Shown piece by piece: positions 250 to 44,780 of a DNA stretch of 64,000 nt; the first letter of the stretch is position 1, and every line of letters starts with the position of its first letter. The position numbers and the translations under genes were made by a program. The DNA comes from Syncephalis fuscata S228 (Eukaryota; Fungi; Zoopagomycota), in the NCBI GenBank assembly GCA_025786725.1, contig JAHLTZ010000007.1, positions 248,001 through 312,000 of the forward strand, written 5' to 3'. The notes beneath the pieces were generated by a model. The model was not told where the DNA came from, made no database searches, and was given only the letters and a program-made list of their open reading frames with translations.

Positions 250-1602
250 ATGTCGACTGTTTTGGAACAACTTAAGCAATACACTACGGTAGTTGCTGAT
301 ACCGGTGACTTTGAGAGTAAGTTGTATTCTAACTACTGAAGAGATCTTTAATAAACATCTTTATTGGCGTGCATGTTGTAAATAGGCATTGCTCAATACA
401 AGCCAACGGACGCTACTACCAATCCTTCGTTGATTCTCGCAGCAACGAAAAAGGAAAAGTATGCTCCATTGGTGGAACAGGCAGTTGAATTTGGCAAGCA
501 ACGTGGCAGGTAAGTTGATGGATAGATATAGCATAGTGACGTGCCAATAATCTTAACGATTCATTGATGACAGCACGGCTGCTGAGAAGGTCGACTGGGC
601 CATGGATAAACTAGTAAGATAAAAATTAATCAAGCAATTATGTTTATACCAACAATCATTATATTGGTTAATAGTTGATTAACTTTGGTGTTGAAATCCT
701 TAAACTGGTTCCAGGCCGTGTATCAACCGAAGTGGATGCTCAGTAAGCACTACAATGGATAGATTATGACAATTCACTAATGTTATTGCTAGTTTGTCCT
801 TCAACAAGCAAGCAACCATTGACAAGGCATTGCGCCTAATTAAGCTATATGAAGAAGTCAATATTCCCAAAGAACGCATTCTTATTAAAATTGCTTCAAC
901 TTGGGAGGGTAAGTTACGAGGCAAGCCATACAGCTACATTTTATTAATGATTTTTATAGGTATCCAGGCCGCACACGAACTCGAGACGAAACACGGCATC
1001 CACTGCAATCTTACATTGCTATTCTCCTTTGCCCAAGCAGTTGCTTGTGCCGAGGCCGGTGTTACTTTAATCTCACCATTTGTCGGTCGTATCTTGGACT
1101 GGTACAAGAAGCAAACAGGCAAGGATTACGCTGATCCAGAAACAGATCCAGGCGTTGTTTCTGTACGTCGCATCTATAACTACTACAAGGCCCACGGCTA
1201 CAATACCATTGTGATGGGTGCCAGTTTCCGTAATACCGGTGAGATCCACGCACTTGCCGGCTGCGACTACCTTACTATTTCACCAGCTCTACTTGAAGAT
1301 TTGAACAATGCGCAAACAAACTTGCCACGTTTATTGTCTCCAGAAAAAGGTAATATATTGATAAGCAAAATGATTTATTTTAAACTATGAGCTAATCATT
1401 AAACTATAACATAATAATAATGATGATAATAATAATAGCTGCTGCTCAAGCTGATGCAAAGATCCATCTGAATGAAGCTACCTTCCGCTGGCAGCTTAAC
1501 GAAGATCCTATGGCCACTGAAAAGCTGAGCGAAGGTATCCGCAAATTTGCCGAAGATGCCACCAAATTGTCCGATGATTTGCTAGCCAGGGTCAATGCTT
1601 AG
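250..1602 (+). CDS. TAL1: Transaldolase (multi-exon)
   Basis: [52 protein letters not shown] (catalytic Lys), [37 protein letters not shown]. Short GT-AG introns join the ORF-track fragments. TAG at 1600-1602. Confidence 0.97.
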
Positions 1603-1855
1603 ACACAGTGATGCTATTACCGACAGGTTAACGCGTTTATTTAGTCTGTTTTTAATAAAGGATAGACTATTTAACACAACAGTGCATTATTATTAGTAGC
1701 CATTACTTATTTACTAATTGCTCATTTGAACTTTTAATATTGGATCATTATACGTTATTTATATTAAATTTTATCAATGATTTTATCAAATCTAATATAT
1801 ATATATTACCGAAATCACAATAATTTAATCAAAGAATATTCAAATATTTCATCGT

Positions 1856-3881
1856 TTAATTGCCACCACTTTTCCCCGAAACCATTTGACGAATCTAAAT
1901 AAACACGGTTATTTATCAATAAACAATGGATGTGCTAATAAGCTACAACTTACACGCTTATACTTTTTTGTAGGAAAATTTGGTGCCACTTCAATAGCTT
2001 CATACGGTAGTAGCCATTCGAGCAGTGTTAAGAATAGTAAATCAATGGCTGCCATAATGCAAAATAACTTGCCAGCCCATAATCCACAGCCATAATAACG
2101 ACGAAGACGTTCAATAAAAGGCGGTGTTGATATACGTATAATATGATCGTATACCTATTTATTAGCACATCAATTAGCGTCTATTCTATGTTTGTAAATG
2201 TATCTTACTATTTCTGTACGAGCTGCTACATTTGCCCAACTATACATCTCTTTAACCTCTTCGTGTTGTCGCATTGGTAATACCTCTTTCATTTGAACGC
2301 TTTTAACTGCTTGCATTACAGCTCGCACCAAATCTGTGTAATTTTGGATAACTATAACTATAACTAAATATAATAGCAAATAGATCTTACCATTTTCCTC
2401 GGGTTGAGCAAAGCAAATCATATGCGGCGGCAATACTTCAGGAATACCTCCTACATGAGTACTCACAACCGTAAGTCTTGGCAAAGTCAATAAATGGCTC
2501 ATTTAAATAAAATATCAGTTACTGACCCACAACTTGCTGCCTCGACTACAGCAATACAAAATGCTTCTGTAAGACTAGTATTTAAGAAAATATTGCCTTG
2601 TACCAATACCTGCATTTATAAATAGTGGTTACGGTAAATAAATTGTTATGATAAACTATGCTTTACTCACATTGCGCACTTCATGATGTTTTACTGAGCC
2701 AATAAAGCGCACTCGGTCATGCAATAAACAGTTTTCTCGCATTTGCTCCAAATCTATTCGCTTGGCGCCATCTCCCGCTATTCTCAAACAATTAGCATAT
2801 TGCAGCCATGTTCGTCACTTTAACATACCAATAAGAAATCGAACTTTAGGAAATGCTGCACATACCCGGGGAATAACGGCAACAAGTAAATCAATGCCTT
2901 TTCGATAGGCCAATCGACTAATAACAACAATAGTAACTGATTTACATTATATAAAGTGCCATTAATATTTCATTATTGCAATAATCTATCATCACTTACT
3001 CCAATTGGGATCCGGCGCACTTGGATCAGGCAGAAATTGCGATACAGCAATAGCATTAGGAATGACCGATACATCTTCTGGATTAAGCGCAGCTCGCAGC
3101 ACTGTATTCTCTTTACTGAAAAAAAAACTATCAATTAATACTACGTTTATATGGTGTATTAAAACTACCTTGTATGTGACACACAAATAACATGATCGAC
3201 ATCTGAAAGTGTAAACTTTAATATCTTGTTACCAACAACATTGCCAAGGTCATTAAACCCAAAGAGTGAATGATCGGTAAAGCAGGTGCGCAATCCCATC
3301 GTTCGAGCATGAAATATCGCTTCATGACATAGAGGCGATAGTGCCTATGCAAACAGTACCGCCCAATTGGTTATAAGTTTGATAACAGAGCTTTAATTTT
3401 ACATGTTCGATTGGCCTACCTGATGTCCATGCACTACCTGTATCCGCTCTCGAACATAGATTGCTCGCAGCAATGGTAAAAATGCAAAGAAAGTTGGCGG
3501 TATTGCTTGTTGATAGCCAACCCAAGCTGGAAGATAATACACCTTAAGACCATTGGTAAGATAGCGTATACCCGTACGCTGACCATAAGCATGCGTTACA
3601 ACCACCACCTAGTATTTCATAGTGTTAGTCATGGCCAGCACTTTATACGACCAACTGCCACTTACTTTATGTCCTCGTTCGATAAGCTGCTGGCCCAAAT
3701 GAAATAAATGTGATTCTACACCGCCCATGTTCGGGTAGAAAAAGTCGGACACCAGGCTAGCGTAATATTAGCAAACAGTAAACAGTTGTATTATCGGCAC
3801 TAGTTTTACTTACCAAATGTTCAAACGACACATCTTGCCCGACACATTCGGCTGAGTAGCTGGCTGTATACTCGTCGCCAT
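1856..3881 (-). CDS. GPI3: Phosphatidylinositol N-acetylglucosaminyltransferase catalytic subunit (PIG-A/Gpi3/Spt14), multi-exon
   Basis: [105 protein letters not shown]. The terminal exon is inferred from splice sites. Confidence 0.95.
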
Positions 3882-6839
3882 TGGCTAATGAAATAAGTAA
3901 AATACAATAAAAGTAGTATATAGAAGGAAGGGAATTCAGTAATAAGGATAAAAAAGAATGAATTGAATTGCTGGAAAGGAGGATGTGGGCACGTAATTAA
4001 CTATCGATTTTTTATTATGAGTTAATTAGTGTTATTTGCAATTGCCAAATAGAGAAGTTGTTTAACAAACTGAAAAATAGACTTTGCGATGAAATAAACG
4101 CATTGTAGCTAATATCATCACATTCCCAATAAAATTAATAATTATAAATAAATCTGTTATTTTTATTGCTTTTATTGTTGTTACTAGTGTTATTATTGCT
4201 CAGCTTTAATTAATAAATTAGTCATAATAAGACTATTTGAATAATCAATTAAAACCACACATGGCCATAAACCAATCATTGCTATGCATGCAAGTTATCT
4301 GCAAGTCAAATAGCATTGAATATGCTAAACGATATTGATAAACTAAATAACACTGAATATAATAAATGACATCAAATATAATAAATACTACTGGTTATAT
4401 TGTAGTGAATAGTAATGATGCTATAAAATACATTAATAGTTATAACCACATGTAACTTAAACACAATTTAAAAGAACTTAAATACCTTTGAATTATAGTA
4501 AAAACCAATCAGTTATATGTTTACTTTCCGTGCAAATGGACAATGGAGACTAGAATATGATAAAAAGTGTGCATTACTATTCCTTAGTGTGGGAAAATGC
4601 GTAATTTACAATTACCCAATGTGATAATAGCATATTTCAACCATCATATTTTATTTTATCATAAAATAATCATCATATCGTCATAAATGAACGCACACTC
4701 ACACTGCGTCATTTATAGATACTGGCAAACAGTTTATAGTATTGCTTAAACAGAACGGATCCATGGGATGACGGAATACTTGCCATTAGCGGTGACTATC
4801 ACGACAGAAACGCTAAATGGTATATATTTGTACATAAAATACGAAGACTTTGCTTAAGGTGACACAACTATGATTAAATCAAGTCGTTATCTATCTAAAT
4901 AGGATGGCACTAAGACATGGTATTTTGTTACTGATTCTACTGATGTGATAGTTTATGCTATAAACAGTGAATTCGTGCACAGTAGCATGCCAAGACCCAT
5001 GCAACCGCTCTACCAGCTACTTTCTACTGCATGAGGCTAGATTTCTGTCATCCATGATGTCATGCCATAGCATAGCAAGGATCAGCAAGCGGCACCATGT
5101 AACAGCAAGTAAACCAGCCGGTTCTCACATGCATACTGCTCAGTGATTCGGTCAAGGTATCTTCCTTGTCATTATTAGAAACATAAGTAGTCGTGGCATA
5201 GTTTGTATCTATTCTACTTACCTTTGATTCCTTTGCTCGTATCTTTTCTATTCCACTTTTTAGCAATATATCTACTACCAACTCGATTACTCTGCACATT
5301 AAAGTTTATCTTTTGCCATTACTTTTTTCTTCACTTGTAAGTACTTTGCCATTTCAAAACCGCTCCATTCTTTTCTCAAACACACACACGCACACCATAC
5401 ATCCTTCCATCAGTAACCCATGTATGATGCTTAGTGTATGAATGGTCACGGGTGTAACCAATCGATTTATCATCTTAACATTTGAATACTCTGCCTATTT
5501 TCTCATCTCCCCATCTCATCTATTAGTGTGCTGTGCTGTTATATATATTTTCTGTACAGTCTACATTTTCCACCCCTCTTTTCATTACCACCACCACCAC
5601 TTCTTCTATTTGCACATAGCTTTTCTTACGCCCTTTCCTCCAACTAAAGGTTAGAGCAGTTATTGCTGCTACCTTGGAGTGTATCAGCGACCAAAAAGCC
5701 TAAACCACTTGCTTATTCTTCTGAAGCAAGTCGTAAGGTCTGGTCACTTTCTTGTTATCGAGGTGCTGGTGCGGCTGTTTCACATTGTAGCGGCATTTTC
5801 GCACGATTCTTTTTTACTTAACCAAATAGCTGCAGACCAGCCGTTAACCTTATTACACCAAGCAACTTTTATATTTCTCTTGGTAACTGTTTGGTAAGTA
5901 ACGCGTGTATTGTGGTATCAAAAGTGAATTTTTTTATTGTGAGGAATGTGGTAATTCTTTATTTTCTATACATATGTATTACACATCCACACATACACAA
6001 AATTGTATTGCCATTTTTTCCAACTGCCAATATCAGCGTGCATCTCACATTCGAGTTGCAGAGCTAGCGGATCAATCGTGCCGGAAACCCGTCTCACTTT
6101 TCTTTTGCACAGGAAAGGCGAAAAAAGTAAGGGGACTTTAAGAAGGAGTAAAATTTTACTAAGCCGATGTACCTGATGGCATGTCATAAATGATCAATCA
6201 GCAATTAATGCATACTTGGCTAAGTATTTTCTGGGCCTTGGCATCTTATTAGATTGATCTACATATGATGTCAGGTCTAGTAAACGTCCATGTCAATATG
6301 AGTAATTGTTTTGTATTCCAGATTTTCTATTTTATTACTCGCTTCTTTTGTTATGAATTACAAAACGCCTTGAATATCCCACTTTATATCCCACTCACAC
6401 GTGGACGGTTCTAATTGCGTAAATATCACTTTATGGCCCAACTTAACAGTAGCTTTTCTATTCCTTATTGTTTCACAACATTAGCCTTTTTACGGGCAAA
6501 TGTGTAACTTGCCTCACTACTTGACCAACATTCAATACGCCTTGGTCTTGGGTGCGTGAAATTATTGTTTTTGTTTTTGAGCATGAACACCGTTGTGTAG
6601 TATTTTTGTTTGTGCCTATTCTTACCGAAACATTCTCCTTAACAACCGGTCTACTTCAAAACACCGCAAATGAAACTGTTTTTATATCTATAATGTTTCT
6701 TACTTACTAACTAACCATTCTTGCCATCATCCATCCTTTCTAGCTTACTCTACCAACCAAGCTATTGAATCAAGCTTTTCGTACTTTAGTCGATTTTAAG
6801 CCTTTAGTTTTAGCAATAATTAGCATTATATTACAGCGC

Positions 6840-9030
6840 ATGTTTCGATTAGGCTACGATACTCACGCTGATCAAGCGCATTCTTTATCCATCAGTGCAC
6901 AGCATCTTAAAAATGCCCCGTCATCTCCGCCGTTAGAATATGACTCATTATCGGCTACTGAAGAGATGACCCCTTCTCATGAACGACCTATAGCAGCCCA
7001 TTCATTACCGACCAGCTTGCCTAATACTGTATCGACCACACCAACAAGCACGCGTTGGTTATCGGCGCCTATCGATAAACTGCGTGGCCGTCTACAGCGT
7101 TTGGGGTCATACAACAATGGCCGAGGCACAATTAGTAATGATGCCGACCTATCGGATACGGCTCCGATCAAGATGTCCAAAGACGACAATATCATTTTGC
7201 GCAATAGCAGTATTCAGTCGTGGCAGTCACATGTTTCGTTGCCTGATTGGGTCGCTTATAACGATAAAGAGAATATGACCGTTAGTCAGTTGGATCAGTA
7301 TGATTACACACGTCGTCAACACCTGCCACTACAGCCGCGTATTAACACGCCGGATTTAATGAGCGCTGGTCATCGTGATGGTCTAATGCCAATCCATGCA
7401 ACTGAAATGACGCATGATGTAAATCGACGGTCTATTACATCCCAAGTGGAACTGACACCAGCATCGACGGATTATGAACAAAGCGAATCCAATTTGGGAT
7501 CATTCCCATCGCCGGCTCTCAGTGCTTGTCCGTCACTTGATTTGATGGACGTACGGCCAACGGGTATCCACTCTTCTTCTTCGTCAATACACTCTGTCTT
7601 ATCGTTACCGTCGCCTCTGACTGGCACAGCAACGGCTGCCTGTGGCTCCCTTTATACACCAGAAGCAATAGCACAACACTTTAATCCTACACAGCTTAAT
7701 AAAGCTTTGGTAAATACGCCGTCAACCGGGCCTGCAAGTATATCTACTGGCGTGTCTTCACCAAGACAATTGCCGCTGCTAACGATTTCGGTACCATCAC
7801 CAACATCGGCCTTCCCGGTGCATGCACATAATGATAACATTGCCGGTCAACCGCGCTTAACCGACAAGCTGGTATTCTCATCGCCAGTTTTGGAGGAAAA
7901 GTCGACACCGCCGTCGATGCTACGTGAGCATAGTTTGGCCACCACTACTTCCAGTTCAGATAGTGCGACCGTTTCAGAAAATCATAGTACGGTCGACATC
8001 GATGCACCCTTCCCAACCACACGCTACAGGCCAGTTCGCCAGTTGGGCAGCGGCTCATTTGCTAGCGTATGGCTAGCCCATGACAAGCTCGATAATTATC
8101 GTAAAGTGGCCATCAAAGTAGTTACAAAGAAGGCAGAACAGCCAACAGATACTGCTGTTGTTGTGGCTAACGTAGAGCGTGCCCGACGAGAAGCTTCGTT
8201 ATTAAGAGTAAGTATTAATTATTAACTGTGCACTATTATTAAACAATTACTAATCATTTACGTATTTATTTATTTATTTTATTTAGACATTAAATCACCC
8301 CAACATTGTAAAAATATTTGATGAATTCGAAACGGAAGATGTATTTTGTTTAACTCTGGAGTATGCTAATGCCGGTGATCTATTCGACTGGGTCACTCGC
8401 GAGCACAATGAAACTACCAAGACAGGCAGCGAATTTGAACAAGTCGTCCGTGACATATTTGGCCAACTGCTACACTCACTACTATATCTCCATTCACAGC
8501 ATGTCATTCATCGTGACATAAAGCTGGAGAATGTATTGCTAGAGAGTGTACCAGTGACTGAAGCTACACCTTCAGGCCTACGTGTTATCTTAGCAGATTT
8601 TGGTCTAGCTATTACACACGTACCACGCGGTGAACAGCCTTTAATGGCCGGTTCCGATGAGTACGCCGCACCTGAAGCAATTCTTCAATCGGCCATGTCA
8701 GCCTCGGCGCCAGTTGTTTCGCCAACTTCAGCGACAAGTGGCTATGACCGTTGTAAAACGGATGTTTGGTCACTAGGCGTTGTTCTTTTTGCACTACTTT
8801 ACGGTCGTTTGCCCTTTTTACGTAAAGCCGGACAGACGCGGCGCAGCTTTCTTTATCGTGTTGCGCAAGGCGATGTCAGCTTTCCGTCGGATATCGACAT
8901 CAGTAATGCTGCTGCGGATATTGTCCGCGCATTATTACGTCGCAAACCAGGCGATCGTCTTTCATTGAACGAAGTTAGACACATGTCTTGGGTCCAAGAC
9001 TATGTGTTGCCACTTGCCGCCTCCTTCTAA
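6840..9030 (+). CDS. Ser/Thr protein kinase (CAMK-like) with long Ser/Thr/Pro-rich N-terminal region
   Basis: LGSGSFASV, VAIK, intron ~8209-8287, LNHPNIV, HRDIKLEN, DFG, GSDEYAAPE, DVWSLGV. The start is taken as the first in-frame ATG and is uncertain; a 5'-UTR intron at ~5894-6743 is possible. Confidence 0.9.
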
Positions 9031-9417
9031 TAATGTCTCGGTTTTAGTTTTGCAAATCTGTTTCCCTTCATTCTCAGTAATCTGTCTTTATTTTGTTAAC
9101 ATTATTGCTATCTTGTCCTGTATATCTTAACTGTGTCTCTACAGTAAGCATATTACTATCTCTGCATCCAATTACCTGTCAAAGTATTCACTAATAACAC
9201 TCTGACTTATCTAAATTTACGACCTATGCTTTTATTATTTTGATAGCAACTTTCGCCAATAGTTTATCTATTTCTATTTCAGTAGCGCTTATTACAAATG
9301 CCGCGACATGAATTTGTCCGGTTTATAACGACAATAAACATAATTCAAACATCATGAAATTACATAGTGTGCATACCAATATAGCTAATAGCAAACAAAC
9401 AACTTTATTGAATTGAT

Positions 9418-11139
9418 TTACATTGCTGGTGCAATAGGAACTTGATGTTGACGATCATTGTTGGCTTGCTTAGCGGCGATGGCAGCTTTTCTTACTGGCA
9501 CAACCGACTCGGTGGTAGGATCATAGTGCACGTCAAATGGTCGATTTAGTGTAGAAAGATACGCACGCACTTTCTTTTGGACATCGGCCAAACTATCGGC
9601 GACAAAATAGACGGACTGGAAGTCGGTAACGGTATACTCTCGTGTTGCTGCTTCATGTGGATTAAACGGCACGCGTTTAGCATTGTCGGCCAAGCAGTGT
9701 TCAAGTTCGGCAATCGATGCAAGCATGCCTGCACCGTAGGCTCGCACCTCGCTACCTTCATAGCATAGACCAAACTCTACCGTATACATAAACAACTATC
9801 ACAAGTAGAATAAAAATGAATTAATCATATCAATAGTTGTGTTAAAGTATGCTTTAACTTACTGCAGACAATCTTTCGATATCTTCATCGCTGGCTCCTA
9901 ATGAGGCAAGGCCAATCTCTTGACAAAAAGCAGCATAATTTGGATCGGCCAAAAGTGCAACGTGTCCAAAAAGTTCATGACATAGATCACTAAATGGCAT
10001 TATTGTGCGTTAGATACGCCGTTTTAACCGTATAAATCTACTTACGGCTCAACCGAGTAAAACGGCGACGAATGGTATCGAATATACTGAGTGGCGCAAA
10101 AGACGCGGAACGCAAGACAGTTAAGGAAGTTGCGTGATGTTAATACACCCATTGCCGGACGCATAATGAATCCAGTTCGTTCTTAATAAATAAGCTAGAT
10201 TAGCAAGTGTTTTACGTGATAATAAATCGTTTCTTACTTTTAAGGAACTCTGTAATATCAGCTTGTTGTGGAATATTGTCCTCGCTATAGCCGCAGTGCT
10301 GCTCAAGAAGTACAAAGTTTTCCCTGAATTCGCGGCAGGCATGTGTTGGATAAAGCTCTTTGGTCTTACGATAAACTGCTCGCCTAAAAAGAATCATTAT
10401 AGTCAATATCGTTATACTCAATCCTGTGTAGCCATCTTACCATGTTGCAATTTCCTGTGGTGTATATGTAATGCGTGGCAATTGATCACCACTGAAAATA
10501 GCGTATTTAATAATAGATTTACGTAATGAAGCTATTGACTTACTGTGAATAGTTGTTAGCAATGCTGGTGATTTCAACACGACGTTGTCGGAATGTAATA
10601 TCATTAAATCCAGGATGATCAGGTTCTGAGTGGTATAAAGTGTTAAAATACTACTGTATACAACATACACTTACCAAGTTCTTTTGTTTCTGGAACAACG
10701 TTGCCGCGTTCTTCATCAAGATCCGCAGCTGTACGAGGAAAAGCTGGCGATTCATTAACGAGTAATTCTAGGTCATAATTGTTTGATTCGACTAGACGAA
10801 CGTTTTTTGCTACTTTTTTTAGTGTGGCTTGGATCTCTATCATTGACTAATATACATAATAAGCATTGGTCAATTTAAATGCATTGACATAAAACCAACA
10901 TTATTTGTTTTGTCGACCAGCAGTTCAATAAACATATCTTGTCCATGAGTATGATGGCAACTCGGGCGTGACTCGATACGGGCCAAAGAGATATTGAATG
11001 GCTGAAGTACGGTAAGACAATTGGCCAACGTTTCTACCTGATTATCAATTGAAAACATGAGCGCCATGCGCTGAGTTTTCATATCGATATCGGTTAGATG
11101 GCCGATGGGATGCGAGATAGGTTGTTCAATTCGATTCAT
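9418..11139 (-). CDS. PAH: Biopterin-dependent aromatic amino acid hydroxylase (phenylalanine 4-hydroxylase-like) with N-terminal ACT domain
   Basis: ACT motif [11 protein letters not shown]; PDHPGF; [10 protein letters not shown]; [11 protein letters not shown]; iron ligands in [11 protein letters not shown] and TVEFGLC; AYGAGMLAS; YFVADS. Multiple short introns. Confidence 0.92.
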
Positions 11140-37168: not shown

Positions 37169-40100
37169 CTATACTTCGTATATATTGTTATCCTCTGCTT
37201 GATAAGTATTTTCGCTGAGAAAGTCGCTATCACTACTTTCGCTACTTTCATCGCTATCTCCATATTTATCTGATTCATTTTCACTTTCATATCCATTAGC
37301 AATCTCAGCATCATCATCATCATCATCATCATCATTATCATTATGTGGTGCGAAACTGATGGGTGGTGGGCTGTGACCCAGTTCATCAACGAATATAGTT
37401 GGACGACCGCTAATGTCTAGATGATCTGCAGGTATATCCACGCTGTTAGGATCGATATCAGGACTCGGTTGTCCTATTTCTACTTCACTACCGCTGCCAA
37501 CACCGCTTAACAAGGTGCGTACACGCTCCGCACTCGTGTTGCTTTCTATTGTTTGTGTTGCACCACTATCAGCGCCGTTACCATTAATGACATTATTCCT
37601 ATTTTCGATTTGTGATGCCGATATATTAAGTTGAGCACGGCGTAACCGACGTCGACAGATGGCAATCTTTTTCTCAATCACCATACGATTTTCAATCATA
37701 TGTAGTTTTGGCCAGGTACGGCGCCGACCCTTATTCATATAATGAACCATGCTTTCTGGTGTTGGATCTTTCAATAGTCTGGGATAGTCTCCTGGGGCAA
37801 TCTTAGGAATAATGGTAACGTTGCCGTGAAAGCGCTGCAGCCATAAAAATGCCAAATCTTCGTCCATAATACGAGGCAGTAATTCCAAATCGGACACAAT
37901 ACGAACCCATTTTTTTAGATCCAATTTTAGGCCGTGTTCAATAGATGAGGCCACGAAGCCACCTCGCCTATAATAGATATATTAATAAATGAACCAACAA
38001 GTAGTAACGTTCAGCTCACCATCCTTGACCACGTAAATGAGACGATGGTCTACCTACACTACCGCGATGGTCATAGAAGAACAGGATGACATGCGGATTA
38101 ACTTGGCTTACAATGGTATATCGAACATTAAACTAATAAATCATAATATAAGATTATTTAACTTCGTGTTATCATGATAATACTTACGTAATGATTTAAT
38201 GCTTCAATTGGAATATCCACTCGTAGACTTCCATCACGCCATGTATGACCACTATGAATGAATGGTTCGGCTTCACCTGCTTCATTTTTCATCATAAGCA
38301 CAACTGGTTGCAACAAACCAGGAACGGCAGAGCTAGCCAACACTAAAAACAACAGTCAATTAACTAATACATTAAATAACAGGCTTTTAACACCACTACC
38401 CACATGCACTCCATATAATAACATCAGGCGCCGTTAGATGATTGAGCAACTTTGGCGGTCCATGGCCGCCATATGGCACTACAGTTACATTAAGAATACG
38501 ACCAGTACGTTCAAATGCCTCACGGAATGTTGTGCTTCCAAATGTTACCCATTGAAGTTTCTCGGCCATTTCTGTCACTTCAAGCCTGTATAAACTTGTA
38601 ATTAGTATACTCGGTCGTTATTGCTAATAAGTATTAGTGAACCTACATGACACGTTTTTGGATAAATCGCTTAGCTACCGTCTATGGATTATAATAGTAT
38701 ATATTACATTAGTTTATTATCTCAATATTCCTTCTACTTACTATCCATCCATCAGTAAATGGATTAATACGGTCTGCCAATTGTGGTGTTATTAAAGGGC
38801 GTAGCTCCTCATCAGTACGCACACCAATAATAGCCGCTAAATTAGTGTAATTAGCACTCATCAATGATTATTTATCCATAAACTACTTACCAATAAGTGC
38901 ACCACCACTTGTACCAGTAACCACCTTGGGCAGCAATTGTCGGTCCAATAACGCCTGAATAACACCAAAGTGATAATAAGCAAAAGATGCGCCTCCACTA
39001 AGACACAGGGCCGTGCGACCATAGCTACGGCTGGCCTTTTTAAAAAAACGTATTTTCTTTTCTAAGGATAGCGTATTTGATTCGTAGATATGTTCAAGTG
39101 AACCGGTAACTATAAAATAATATATATTTAACAAATATTAAACTACTTATTACTCGGCCTACCTTGATTGACATAACGTTCCAATACGTCTTTAGTGCCA
39201 TAATAGGTGCGTGAATAAAGACGAGAATTTTCACATCCGCCAATATTGCTTTTCATCGCACCACTAAGTAATGCATCCTGTAAACGTGGTACGGCCGATT
39301 CACCTTGCTCACGTAACTCGCGGAGAAGACGGCCTTGCTTATAAATTAATCGACCATCATACGAAGAATCAAGCGGCTCTCGTTTCCACGCATCTAGGCC
39401 CAGGTAGCGATCAAGTTCCATGGCCGCTTCTTTCCATTCGTTATAATCGCTAGTGTTTTGTAGCTTTTGACGCAGTCGATTCTTATTGCCGCGCCTAAAT
39501 CAAATAATTGCTTATTGTATTAATATGTAACAATTTACGTAAAAATCAAACTTACCACGTAAAAAAATATTCCCACACATTAACTATTTGTCGAACCAAG
39601 AAATATAATATTAATTCAAATAAAACAACACATAAAATGACCAGAAATAAAGGGATGCGTATAAAGGCATAGGTAATACTTGAGGCATGTGATGGCCGCG
39701 ACCGTTTCCTCGGTCTTACAGCGCCCATCAGTGCTGAATGAATACTACGCTGGCTGCGTAGCCGTCCTAGATTGCGTAAGCGTGATTTTAATGTCGATGC
39801 ATGGTATGGGCCATTTGCTGTGTTTGTCCCCCCTCCAGCACTGCTACCTGAATTACGTTTTCGACGTAAAAGTGGCACCTCAAGTGTATTAGATCGTTCG
39901 CCACTATGTTGTGTTTGGCCGGCCATAGAAGAGCGACGTGACGTACCCAACGGTGTGCCGATTCCTGAAAAACTATTGTTTCTTGAACTACCTATACCGC
40001 TATAACTAGCACTGCCACTATTTGCTTCCTGTGACGCTGCTTGAGCGGCCAAACTTAGCGCCTGTTTAAAGGCAGCTAAATGACGATGATCTGTATAGTC

Positions 40101-40247: not shown

Positions 40248-42076
40248 GGCAGCCAGCTATTTCTTTTTTTTCTATGATCACTAGATGATGTGTGCAATGG
40301 TCGTATTGGTTTATCCAATCCAATGAATATTAATAAAGTACTCGATATTGCCAACGCTATATAACTAACAAAATAATATTAGTAAAAAGACTACTATTGC
40401 TATTACTACACAATGAACAATAGTTAATGGCAGAATGTTAAAACGAATGCAATAGTATAGAAGCTGGTCTGGCCACTAGGCTTGGCGTAATATACCGACT
40501 AGTCTTGCCTAGCCGTGAAATAACGCACTGCGTATACCAGTTATTTAAAATAGAAATACCGGTGTCGTTATTGTATACTATAAAATCCGTCAATTGTACG
40601 AATAACGGGCTGACCAGTGCAAAATAGATAATGCGCAGAACTGAAGTTTTGTCGTTAATACAATAACTAAAGAATCAATAGAAAAATGTTTAACGTTAAA
40701 GCCCCAAACATTTTGTTTTGGATCATTGTAGAACAAGTGTGCCATTTTTGGGGGAAATTGAATAACAGCGACTAGCGGGGATACAGACCAGCTGATTGGA
40801 AGTTACGAGTGTGTACCGATAAACTCATGGTTATGATGTAACTGTTTGGCTGGTTCTCGCCTTATTCGGGAAATAATACCCGCTTTTTATTCAGCAAATG
40901 AGTTTGTATGATATAATTGCGCACTAGTATTATGAGAAAATGCTATGAACTTGTTTGTTACTAAATTATCTCGTGCCTATCGGCTGTTCGCTGTTATTAT
41001 TGCTATTCAGATACACATGCAACAACGGCATATTAAATTCAATAGTCGATAGACAGAGTGGTACAATAATCATTTTCCTTTTCTTTCAATAAAAGTAGTA
41101 AGGAGCGTGTTTGTAGAAACAATAGAAATTTAATATTACAATTATACGCTTTATTGTGTATTGATTTACACGGTAGTATTGATCAAAGATTAAAGCAACC
41201 AGTGTAGTCCTCCATTTAGTATGTTGAGAAAGAAATATTATACACATGAATTAATTACTAATTTATAACATGCCTATTAGCTACTCGCTACTCTTATTAC
41301 CATCTAATACACATGTAATGATGAAATATTGATATCAATATTTGATAGGCATGGTTACACGATAGATGTTTTTGATTTTTCATTGCCCATTGCTGCTGAT
41401 GCATTATAATAGCATAAATGGTTTATTTATCAGCTGACACATATTATTATTTTAAATAAAGTTTATTGCCTAAGATAGATATTAAATAATAACATGCTGT
41501 ATATGTGCATCATAGGTAATGTATACCGTATATCGTAGAATAGCCATAAAGTGTTTTATAGTTAATTAAACACTAAAAACAATTGTAGACACAATGGTAA
41601 TAAAACAGTCGACATCATTGTCTGTTTTATCACTATTCTAATTACATCATATAAACTTGGGCAAATATAAAGTATTTTAACGGCACTTGGATGAATTGTA
41701 TTAGTATACATGTGTATTCCATTAAGGTTTGTTATAACTACCAATTGAAACTTGATTCCAATTAGTTGGTTTGTATACTGTAGAATAACCAGTGCTGATT
41801 TAAAATAAAACTGTAATTGGCATTACTAAACGAATAGAGCTGCCTAGTATGTTATGTATGTCATTTTAACCTATGACATACTTCACGCTTAATCGGTTGA
41901 ATCCTGTAACACAAATGCTATTCGTCAGTTTATCACATTGTAAAGATACTGCTAATAATGATGTCTATTCAATATGAGCAATAGCAATAATGATTATTTG
42001 TATCACGGATGTAAAGAATGGTGTTTAAATAAAAGCACGGCTGTTGAATATTACACCAGTAGTTATTTATACGGAA

Positions 42077-42878
42077 GGATAACTGCATAGTACATTGGTC
42101 TTGGACGGTTTCAGGTGAGTCATGTTTTATTGCAGAAATTCGTAATCGTCACAATATAAGCCGGCCTTGCTGCTTTTGAACCAAGCATTATGTTTTTATC
42201 TCCTCTTGCTATTCTTTGTTGCTCGATATGACCTACGCCCCTTTCTCTTACCGCTGTTTGTCGCTCGATATGCTTATCATTTTTTAAATGTCCGATAATT
42301 ACAAGACCGCAGCAACTTACTGTTTTATATGCTTAAGTTTAGTAAATGAGCGTGTGAGGAGCAATGCAGTTGTGTTCTTTGGCTATGTGAGCACCATTAG
42401 ATATATAGTAAACTAGACACTATATGGTTTGGCAGCATGCATTTCAACATGCTGTATACGGTGTTAGACTGCACATAGCCAATAGGCCTTCTGTTCAGTG
42501 ATATGGCGTTTGCTGTGTGTTTGTTTGTGGTAATTGCATTGCTAAGTATTTGGTGTATGGGCAGTAAAGATCTTTAGATATCGCCTATAACTAAATTGAC
42601 TTGGATGTGGTGGTAGGATTAGTTGCTGTTTATATAACAGCCACTAGCTTGACCCTGTACGAACGTACATAGTGTTGCATACGGATAACGTATGCAATAG
42701 AGCCAGTGCGGTTGTGCGGGATGAGAGTAGTGGTTTGTGCGGCTGGTTGAATAGCCTATTGTCGCGATGGTTCTGGGCTTCACGCGATATTTGGTACAGT
42801 GGTATTGCGGCCGGATGCTATGCCCAACAGTTATTTCGGATGCTTAGCAATGTGATTATGCGGCAAGCATAATTGCTA
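42077..42878 (+). ncRNA. Candidate large structured non-coding RNA, family unassigned
   Basis: No credible ORF; GC-richer than the flanks. 42077-42100 pairs with 42809-42836, and more than 10 nested helices lie inside, with G-U pairs that only work on the + strand. Confidence 0.55.
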
Positions 42879-43299
42879 TAGTTTATTTACATGTATCGTT
42901 TGCTAATGTTACTTTTAATAGATATAGATTCCAGGCATGGTTATATTCAGCAAGCATAAAATTGCAATCCATCGTTTAGTCACTATTCTGTACCATTATC
43001 ATTATACATGTGTATTTTTATGAATAAATAAAGTTATTTTGCAAATATTACTGTTACAATCAGCTATATTTGATACAACTTCAGCACACTGCTTATCTTA
43101 ATAGCAATAGTTTATTAATTATTTACTGTGATTTGATGGTTAAATAATCAAATTTAATAATAATTGCCTAATTGAACTAGACATTTGTTTTATTGAAGAT
43201 GGGCCAGGCGGTGAGAAATATTAAATAATAAAATTACTTTATTATATTATTTGTTTTGTGATCAATGATTAACATTCACGTAATTGCACTAGACTTTTT

Positions 43300-44780
43300 T
43301 CTATTGAACATGATGATGGTGGTGAATGGCATTAAAGTTTAAACTACCCATCGTAGATTTATTATTCAGTATGCATATATTCTCTATTCCCCTATATTCT
43401 TTATCAGTATATAATCACCGCTATAAACATACCGCTGTATATATAACTTTACGCTATATTGAATATATTCTATTTGCTATAAATTTTAAGTACATATAGA
43501 CTAATGAACGAATGAGTGACATTAGTCGAGATTTATTAATAATTAAGCCAGAGTCAAACAAACAATGGTTCTAGACGGCGCATGTTCAATATATAATAAA
43601 ATAATGTACATTATAATGAATATACTAACTGAAGCAACGATTAGTCTTACTAAAGCTATTGAGCATATATGCATGAGCAAATGACCGACATTAGTCGACA
43701 TTTATTAATAATGGTGCTAGAACAAAAATAATAACAGTTTTGGATAGTGGAAGGCTATACAAATATAAAATAATATTGAATATAATGAATATACAATGAA
43801 AAGGATATGATAAATGGTGTTAAAGTTATAGTGCATATAATGCAATGAGAGGAATGAACATTTGTGCTAAGCATTATGTGTTAGCATTTGCACTAAGCAT
43901 TATGTGTTAGCATTTGCACTAAGCATTATGTGTTAGCATTTGCACTAAGCATTATGTGTTAGCATTTGTGCTAAGCATTATGTGTTAGCATTTGCGCTAA
44001 GCATTATGTGTTAGCATTTGCACTAAGCATTATGTGTTAGCATTTTTAACAACATTCGCGTAAATAACTACATATCCGCTTTATTGAACATGAAACTGAA
44101 TGCTAAATAGTATCAATCATTAAAATATTCATTATTGTATATTCATTATCTAGTACGCATATATCATCATTACAATACTATGTTAATGCTGTTTATGTTA
44201 TTTTATTTCTAACTTTCTTTCTATACATACTTATCAACTCATCGCGTTTCTGTTTTCCTTGGACTTGCTATTACTGCGAATATCCATCATTTTACTTGAT
44301 CAGCATTAAAGTTATAATCAATTTGTATTAACTAATTGTCAACCAGATAGTTACACTGCACATATATGCACAAGCAAATAAACTAAATAACCTAAATTTT
44401 ATTAGTAATTAAGCTAACATCAAACAAACAGCAGCTCCAAATGACGCGTTAATACTATATAATAGAATGATATAAAACGATAATACACGACATACAAGTA
44501 TAAATAACGTTGTCAAAACTATAGTGCATATAACGCAATAAATGGACTGAATGAAGTGTATTGGTGTATATTAACAATAGAATGTATTCAATATGTCATA
44601 GAATATATATAATAGTGTGGGACAGAATGAGAGTGATATATGTGAATAGAGGATATATGTACACTGAATATATGCATACTGGACAATAAATCTACAATGG
44701 TGAGTATTTTATGATTGATGTCACTCACCACCCATCACCATGTTCATTAGATTCAATGGTATTAAAAATGGTCATTTGAC
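43300..44780. mobile_element. Foldback/MITE-like non-coding element with inverted arms around a minisatellite
   Basis: 43311-43480 and ~44560-44745 are diverged inverted copies (gtagatttatt...cagtatgcatatattc). Both are related to 32716-32984. Confidence 0.55.
43859..44045. repeat. 26-bp minisatellite, 7 copies
   Basis: Unit CATTTG(CA/TG/CG)CTAAGCATTATGTGTTAG in tandem with no spacers. Confidence 0.95.

Follow-up and report, generated by a model that had tools for sequence, protein, structure and literature searches.

A candidate family of structured non-coding RNA genes with a hypervariable arm in Syncephalis fuscata S228

RUF6 of Plasmodium falciparum is a family of GC-rich non-coding RNAs (ncRNAs) found beside the var genes, with about 15 copies of about 135 nt transcribed by RNA polymerase III (Pol III). 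The locus described here occupies positions 42077-42878 of a 64,000-nt stretch of the genome of the fungus Syncephalis fuscata S228 (the window; C339:248001-312000, contig JAHLTZ010000007.1). The two are alike in being GC-richer non-coding islands in AT-rich intergenic DNA and members of a dispersed, expressed ncRNA family. RUF6 is tied to one gene family, whereas the units described here measure about 1.3-1.7 kb, occur in about 70 copies beside unrelated neighbors and carry a hypervariable arm. Fungal telomerase RNAs of the TLC1/TER1 type are likewise non-coding, 1 kb or more in length, probably made by RNA polymerase II (Pol II), multi-branched and tolerant of large deletions and insertions in their arms. 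However, they are encoded by a single copy and contain a template and a core pseudoknot, whereas the present family has about 60-75 copies and no conserved template. Solo long terminal repeats (LTRs), short interspersed elements (SINEs), terminal-repeat retrotransposons in miniature (TRIM), large retrotransposon derivatives (LARD) and retrozymes share with the family a dispersed, non-coding and transcribed nature, bursts within sub-lineages, shortened copies and some RNA structure. Unlike them, the family lacks TG..CA termini, target site duplications (TSDs), A-tails, Pol III boxes, hammerhead motifs and an autonomous partner, and its copies often share long flanks or lie in large inverted duplications. 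Finally, the omega-RNA regions of Fanzor/TnpB systems are also multicopy, structured and non-coding, in a repeat-rich genome and with neither terminal inverted repeats (TIRs) nor TSDs at the unit ends, but the copies studied here have no Fanzor relic within 5 kb and no remnant of a nuclease open reading frame (ORF).

We propose, giving it about an even chance, that a lineage-specific family of structured non-coding RNA genes exists here in about 60-75 copies, one of which has the island as its conserved core. These genes would combine a conserved scaffold with a variable arm and would have been propagated and reshuffled at the DNA level. We favor RNA genes because the unit is multicopy and transcribed, has no conserved ORF, shows a consensus fold specific to the + strand, is constrained in individual copies and bears no transposon hallmarks. 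An earlier note, made from the letters of the window, had described the island as a single large ncRNA gene; the region is instead one of the dispersed copies. The titles and abstract openings retrieved from the literature dealt with phylogenomics, mycoviruses and SET-domain proteins, and none of them concerned this RNA.

Copies, lineages and genomic arrangement

A BLAST search of the 29-Mb genome with positions 42000-42950 returned 41 matches. A covariance model of 157 positions (42372-42528) located 73 places at E<=0.001, about 56 of them at >=120 bits, and the family comprises about 60-75 dispersed copies. These fall into at least 11 lineages (A to K), with 65-78% identity between lineages and 95-100% within them, and the length of the unit ranges from about 1.3 to 1.7 kb. 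The window copy belongs to sub-lineage A. Six further copies match 41461-43116 at 94-99%, as far as their contigs extend; one of the six is cut by the start of its contig and another stops early, at 43045. Copies J, K and I are shortened and end near the equivalent of 42700, and copies B and F have internal deletions. The extent of the unit in the window is as follows.

Positions 41461-43116, + strand: repeat unit of sub-lineage A, 1656 bp, with sharp ends of homology against other close copies and GTTTATT at both ends.
Positions 41790-41830, + strand: point at which the homology common to all lineages begins, some 250 nt before the core, with a conserved AAATAAA(G/A) block.
Positions 42040-43110, + strand: core kept in all 11 lineages, with a majority identity of 65-85% per 50 nt.

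Since all lineages share 42040-43110, the island at 42077-42878 represents the GC-richer part of the conserved core. On C33, C343 and C363 the same arrangement of three covariance-model matches, one strong and two weak, was observed within 2.8 kb, suggesting a composite repeat or another sub-family that has diverged more. The most conserved hairpin, searched as a 24-nt degenerate pattern, had no match among metagenome or viral contigs.

The unit is non-coding. Across the lineages, the coding test found open frames of 55-105 codons whose positions are not conserved and which mostly lack a start codon. Their translations are of low complexity and T/C-rich, and indel lengths between lineages do not follow multiples of three. 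The Rfam 15 covariance models, run on the whole window at gathering threshold, gave tRNA-Cys as the sole match. At E<=10, the island region gave four chance-level matches to unrelated families, the best scoring 16-21 bits against thresholds of 37-73, and the telomerase, RNase P/MRP, SRP and snRNA models had no match in the region even at this level. In line with the earlier note, which assigned the RNA to no family, the region matches no catalogued RNA family.

Many copies are paired in inverted orientation with a near-identical partner. Ordinary genes lie between the members of divergent pairs, spaced 10-40 kb, on C328, C101, C349, C317, C35, C319 and C157. In lineage F, convergent pairs 2.82 kb apart form a palindrome that recurs on at least 7 contigs, namely C313, C220, C216, C225, C26, C206 and C159. 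In the palindrome on C313 (L009, C313:14000-23999), the arms extend over 259-4283 and 5931-9936 with two convergent F units, and 22-bp tandem arrays lie outside, at 243-1212 and 9005-9999. Its 1.65-kb center holds no recognizable gene, and the ORFs found there have no Pfam match. The shortened units J, K and I (L067 and L068, 1450-2170; L066, 1400-1850) each lie tail-to-tail with an amidase paralog, and were therefore evidently copied along with the amidase gene. More generally, long shared flanks or a location within large inverted duplications are common among the near-identical copies, and the spread of the family looks largely segmental, with exchange between copies.

Two smaller repeats lie downstream of the window copy. 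The block 43270-43401 is also found behind the unit in lineages B, D, F and G. RNA contigs cover this block, and its inverted counterpart lies at a distance of 1.3 kb (44666-44705). Positions 43859-44045 hold 7.2 copies of a 26-bp minisatellite, the unit of which is 84% like segment 42172-42196 of the family core. This array is much longer in a segmental duplicate on C336 (L005).

The unit ends show no sign of a known mode of transposition. Neither TG..CA termini nor TSDs of 4-6 bp were present at the inspected junctions of lineages A, E and F, and the inspected unit ends had no LTR, TIR, SINE (A-tail) or Helitron-type hallmark. An inverted-repeat scan of 41400-43200 gave only short arms with 72-92% complementarity, none of them at the unit ends. 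No 3' A-rich tail was found, as the homology between lineages continues for 90-290 nt beyond AATAAA without an A-run. The only regularity seen at the ends is the short motif G(Y)TTATT, present at both ends in lineages A and F. The earlier note had pointed to dispersed copies flanked by TSDs as the mark of a transposable element; the copies are indeed many, but no TSDs were found. The genes beside the copies encode patatin, Sec1, amidase, amidohydrolase, a Cys/Met PLP enzyme, RGS, aldo/keto reductase, DUF2045, SCAMP and DUF7137 proteins. These are ordinary neighbors, and neither a transposon gene nor a kinase gene lies beside the examined copies. The genome contains 71 Fanzor-type zinc-ribbon relics (PF07282), but the 5 kb around each of the 73 family places contain none of them, and no remnant of a nuclease ORF was found in or beside the unit.

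The assembly as a whole is AT-rich (29.4 Mb in 371 contigs). Upstream of the island lies a patatin/DUF3336 gene on the minus strand, and downstream a Sec1 gene on the plus strand. The island has a GC content of 0.37-0.48, against 0.23-0.31 in its flanks, and its longest ORF is 66 aa, in agreement with the earlier description of a GC-richer island without a credible ORF. The 12-bp helix, the 11-bp helix and the CAGCATG/CATGCTG hairpin quoted in that description were all located in the sequence where it had placed them.

Conserved fold, variable arm and constraint

Consensus folding was performed on an alignment of eight less-redundant members of the family and compared with column-shuffled alignments. 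On the + strand, z-scores of -4.6 (about 42330-42525), -4.5 (42515-42720) and -8.5 (42515-42905) were obtained, against -0.8, -1.2 and -4.0 for the three corresponding segments of the - strand. The elements of the fold are the following.

Positions 42339-42906, + strand: central domain closed by the long-range helix 42339-42349/42896-42906, which holds in lineage F too.
Positions 42379-42482, + strand: 11-bp helix 42379-42389/42472-42482 enclosing hairpins 1 and 2, present in all lineages.
Positions 42400-42429, + strand: hairpin 1, present in every lineage, with the near-invariant loop AACTAGAC.
Positions 42432-42455, + strand: hairpin 2 (GCAGCATG/CATGCTGT), present in every lineage and varying mostly by G-U wobble.
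Positions 42531-42858, + strand: sub-domain closed by helix 42531-42549/42840-42858 and containing the arm 42554-42567/42623-42636.
Positions 42754-42815, + strand: hypervariable hairpin arm with a conserved base AUAG(Y)/(R)CUAU, every version forming one closed arm.

Three helices were retained with compensating changes. The helix closing the central domain (11 bp, spanning about 550 nt) showed 19 double-change cells for 7.0 expected, and it is retained in lineage F despite an internal deletion of about 350 nt. The arm helix 42554-42567/42623-42636 (14 bp) showed 13 such cells for 4.0 expected, and the helix closing the sub-domain (19 bp) 11 for 4.6. Each of the three lay above all 500 of 500 shuffles, in pairing as well as in covariation. 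The first two were also the top outliers (z 5-7) among the 168 + strand stems of at least 9 bp; on the - strand, 0 of 34 such stems passed the same filter. RNA-level structure in the core is therefore likely, judging from these alignments.

This fold is not the one originally proposed. What remains of the earlier case for RNA-level structure is that some helices are kept with compensating changes, on the + strand only. The long terminal arm that was to close the ends of the island (42077-42100/42809-42836) is not conserved: it is 77.1% paired across the family against 76.6% in shuffles, with no covariation, and the fraction of changed cells that remain paired is only 14-57% in this arm and the four helices inside it. 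The hairpins at 42675-42697, 42760-42789 and 42845-42878 are particular to the sub-lineage of the window, and the 12-bp helix 42360-42371/42532-42543 does no better than shuffles across the family. The 11-bp helix 42379-42389/42472-42482 fares better, as it exists in all lineages and has two compensated positions, but its support against shuffles is marginal (44-62 of 500 reach it). Recurrent G-U pairs had also been taken as a sign of RNA-level selection. This bias is explained by the G+T-rich + strand, which offers many chance stems (790 of at least 7 bp, against 244 on the - strand). The domain is likely closed at 42339/42906 rather than at 42077/42836.

The apical arm at 42754-42815 is the most variable part of the unit. 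Within lineage A, 25-26 of 50 positions in the arm differ between copies that are otherwise 98-99% identical (arm equivalents at L017:1637-1709 and L020:2221-2293). Three lineage-A versions were distinguished: (i) in the window and on C354, (ii) in two copies on C328 and on C336, and (iii) on C304 and C234. No donor or target of these three versions was found in the assembly beyond the family copies themselves. Lineages B, C, D, E, G and H have unrelated sequences of 54-141 nt at this position, which likewise form closed hairpin arms; the arm base is AUAAU/AUUAU in lineages G and H. The fold is closed in all nine versions, with stepwise C-G -> U.G -> U-A changes between them. The copy on C336 has the flanks of the window copy and another arm, and the copy on C354 has other flanks and the arm of the window copy, which indicates that arms and flanks have been reshuffled between copies.

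Recent substitutions were also compared with the older pattern of conservation. In lineage A, 4.8% of the columns conserved between the other lineages are variable within the lineage, against 9.1% of the rest (p = 0.01). The same comparison gave 6.7% against 12.2% in lineage F (p = 0.008), and pooling the lineages gave an odds ratio of 0.60 for variable sites in conserved columns (p = 6e-4). This depletion fits selection on individual copies. It could also be explained by sub-lineage structure among master copies or by uneven mutation rates.

Transcription of the unit

The RNA evidence comes from a public run of 2017 (X1), in the form of Logan contigs, which holds half of the words of the unit. 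The patatin gene served to judge the nature of this run. Its contig agrees with the genome throughout its 1307 nt (0 differences) and lacks a 61-nt GT..AG intron of the minus strand (39494-39554), and the 790-nt spacer 40679-41466 has zero depth. The run therefore behaves as RNA of the same strain. According to the RNA contigs, the 5' end of the patatin transcript lies near 40667, where adapter sequence follows the contig. The features relevant to transcription of the unit are listed below.

Positions 41636-42958, strand not given by the contigs: interval under the X1 RNA contigs, which contain no splice joint.
Positions 42024-42034, + strand: TATA-like box TTTAAATAAAA, found in sub-lineage A only and inside the RNA-covered interval.
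Positions 43024-43034, + strand: candidate poly(A) signal AATAAATAAAG, conserved in nearly all lineages, which would act as such if the RNA is that of the + strand.

The contigs cover 41636-42741, 42712-42843 and 42814-42958, a span of 1.32 kb of the unit, at depths of 127-208 compared with 285 for the patatin gene. They are unspliced throughout. Their variant letters agree with the copy on C354 at 11 of 12 informative sites and differ from the window copy at 16 of 16 sites of the long contig. A loose contig end at 42399/42430 carries lineage-D sequence, indicating that a second lineage is expressed as well.

The right contig end, at 42958, probably reflects a break of the assembly graph followed by tip clipping, as paralogs differ from each other 1-2 nt further on. 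A + strand RNA ending near 43045-43060 would fit the conserved AATAAATAAAG at 43024-43034; a minus-strand transcript starting near 42960-42990 is an alternative that the contigs allow. Internal T6 runs would make Pol III terminate within the unit. The TATA-like box is indeed present upstream of the island, as had been noted. However, it is not suited to the role of promoter given to it, since the RNA contigs begin about 390 nt further upstream and the box is confined to sub-lineage A. Inside the transcribed unit, at 42115-42160, a TGA(G/C)TCA motif (bZIP/Gcn4-type) and a TATATAAG box are kept in most lineages. They may form an internal promoter or may just be conserved RNA sequence.

Possible nature of the family and its significance

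As a family of RNA genes, the unit would be expressed as an unspliced RNA, about 1.3-1.4 kb long and most probably that of the + strand, which Pol II would transcribe and which would end past the conserved AATAAA near 43027. The RNA would fold into a central domain (about 42339-42906) in which the long-range closing helix encloses two hairpins with invariant loops, another closed sub-domain and an apical arm (42754-42815); the sequence of this arm changes very rapidly, but its hairpin shape persists. The conserved core might act as a scaffold or as a protein-binding platform, and the variable arm might give each copy or sub-lineage its own specificity. The spread of the copies would be due to duplication, segmental and inverted, together with exchange among them, and not to recognizable transposition. 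A bolder version, which we regard as doubtful, is that of a new fungal RNA class. Here, about 70 expressed and structured long ncRNA (lncRNA) genes would share a scaffold and bear an apical arm under diversifying change, with its fold kept and no donor visible in the genome. Each copy would then possess its own specificity element, directed for example at different RNAs or proteins made by S. fuscata itself or by the molds that it parasitizes.

Several points weigh against RNA genes. The evidence for conservation of the family comes from this one genome, and the three supported helices were picked after a scan, from eleven lineages related by descent. For hairpins 1 and 2, covariation is not significant, the paired fraction being 95.4% in the family and 95.0% in shuffles. 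Among chance stems, 43% of changed cells remain paired in other family members, and helix-level fractions of changed but still paired positions were therefore discarded as evidence. The minimum free energy (MFE) of the whole island, which the earlier note had proposed to compare with dinucleotide shuffles, is only modestly better than these and about equally so on both strands: z was -1.46 (20 shuffles) and -2.36 (60 shuffles) on the + strand, and -1.12 and -2.01, respectively, on the - strand. The per-sequence MFE z of the variable arm is also weak (-0.1 to -2.9). The strand, ends and polymerase of the transcript are deduced, as the RNA contigs are strandless. Moreover, the letters of the contigs match the 99% twin on C354 rather than the window copy, so that the expression seen is that of this twin. 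The earlier claim of a non-coding RNA thus holds for the unit, which is transcribed and has no conserved ORF. Finally, the bursts of near-identical copies, the shortened copies and the internal deletions resemble those of selfish repeats.

This resemblance makes an unclassified non-autonomous selfish repeat, either retro- or DNA-based, the alternative we take most seriously, although we hold it only tentatively. Any selected RNA structure would then serve the copying of the repeat itself, the island would be its best-kept internal part, and transcription would be a by-product or a copying intermediate. Such a repeat would account for 60-75 dispersed copies in many sub-lineages, each with recent near-identical members, for the shortened copies J, K and I and the deletions in B and F, and for the many unrelated intergenic contexts. 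Two E copies 9 kb apart have only the 1.4-kb unit in common, lineages A and F have G(Y)TTATT at each end of the unit, and the genome is rich in other dead elements (the 71 Fanzor-type relics). However, the units have no TSD, TIR, LTR end, A-tail or Helitron-type end, no partner protein gene nearby and no adjacent Fanzor relic. The long shared flanks and large inverted duplications point to segmental copying at the DNA level, recent copies spare the conserved columns, and the hypervariable arm retains its fold. A more specific proposal, a solo LTR or LTR pair of an LTR retrotransposon, is largely refuted and in our view very improbable. It would agree with a non-coding, dispersed and transcribed unit of about 1.1-1.7 kb with TATA-like and AATAAA motifs, and with the direct pair on C350, 9 kb apart. 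In this sole direct pair, however, about 7 kb of the interior was read and contained no ORF above about 120 aa, hence none of gag/pol size, and no Pfam match. In addition, TG..CA termini and TSDs are missing, most pairs are inverted and enclose ordinary genes, the TATA-like motif and AATAAA are about 1 kb apart, and nothing else in the window is similar to the unit.

The weak single-sequence z, alike on both strands, the conserved hairpins without significant covariation and the high chance background of kept pairs would all be expected of a DNA-level repeat without RNA function, as would the association of the unit with large palindromes and inverted pairs. Such a repeat would have been duplicated passively by palindromes or segmental duplications, its transcripts being pervasive or read-through and its helices a product of composition and shared descent. 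We consider this unlikely: the consensus-fold signal is specific to the + strand, long-range helices with double changes outlast a 350-nt internal deletion, recent substitutions are depleted at conserved columns, and the RNA depth is similar to that of the neighboring housekeeping-type gene, with zero in the intervening spacer. As for a gene for telomerase RNA or for some other large and unique housekeeping ncRNA, suggested by a size and a branched fold that resemble those of fungal telomerase RNAs, we give it next to no credence. The candidate was rejected on the basis of 73 copies, a template not conserved between lineages and no model match, and the terminal arm is not conserved either. The speculative template CCTACGCCCCT (42232-42242) varies between lineages, and there is no CUAACCCU. 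No (TTAGGG)x4 array was found in the 371 contigs of the assembly, which indicates that the telomeres are unassembled or made of another repeat.

Whether the units are RNA genes or selfish repeats, annotation pipelines will miss the family, which has no relative in RNA databases (Rfam), and readings of a single locus will keep taking individual copies for unique RNA genes, for example telomerase RNA or rRNA relics. If the family is a selfish repeat, it is one without the usual transposon hallmarks that lies preferentially in large inverted duplications, and it bears on genome rearrangement. If it is functional, it constitutes an unusually large and fast-evolving set of structured lncRNA genes in an early-diverging, mycoparasitic fungus, and its built-in variable arm suggests many specificities carried on one scaffold.

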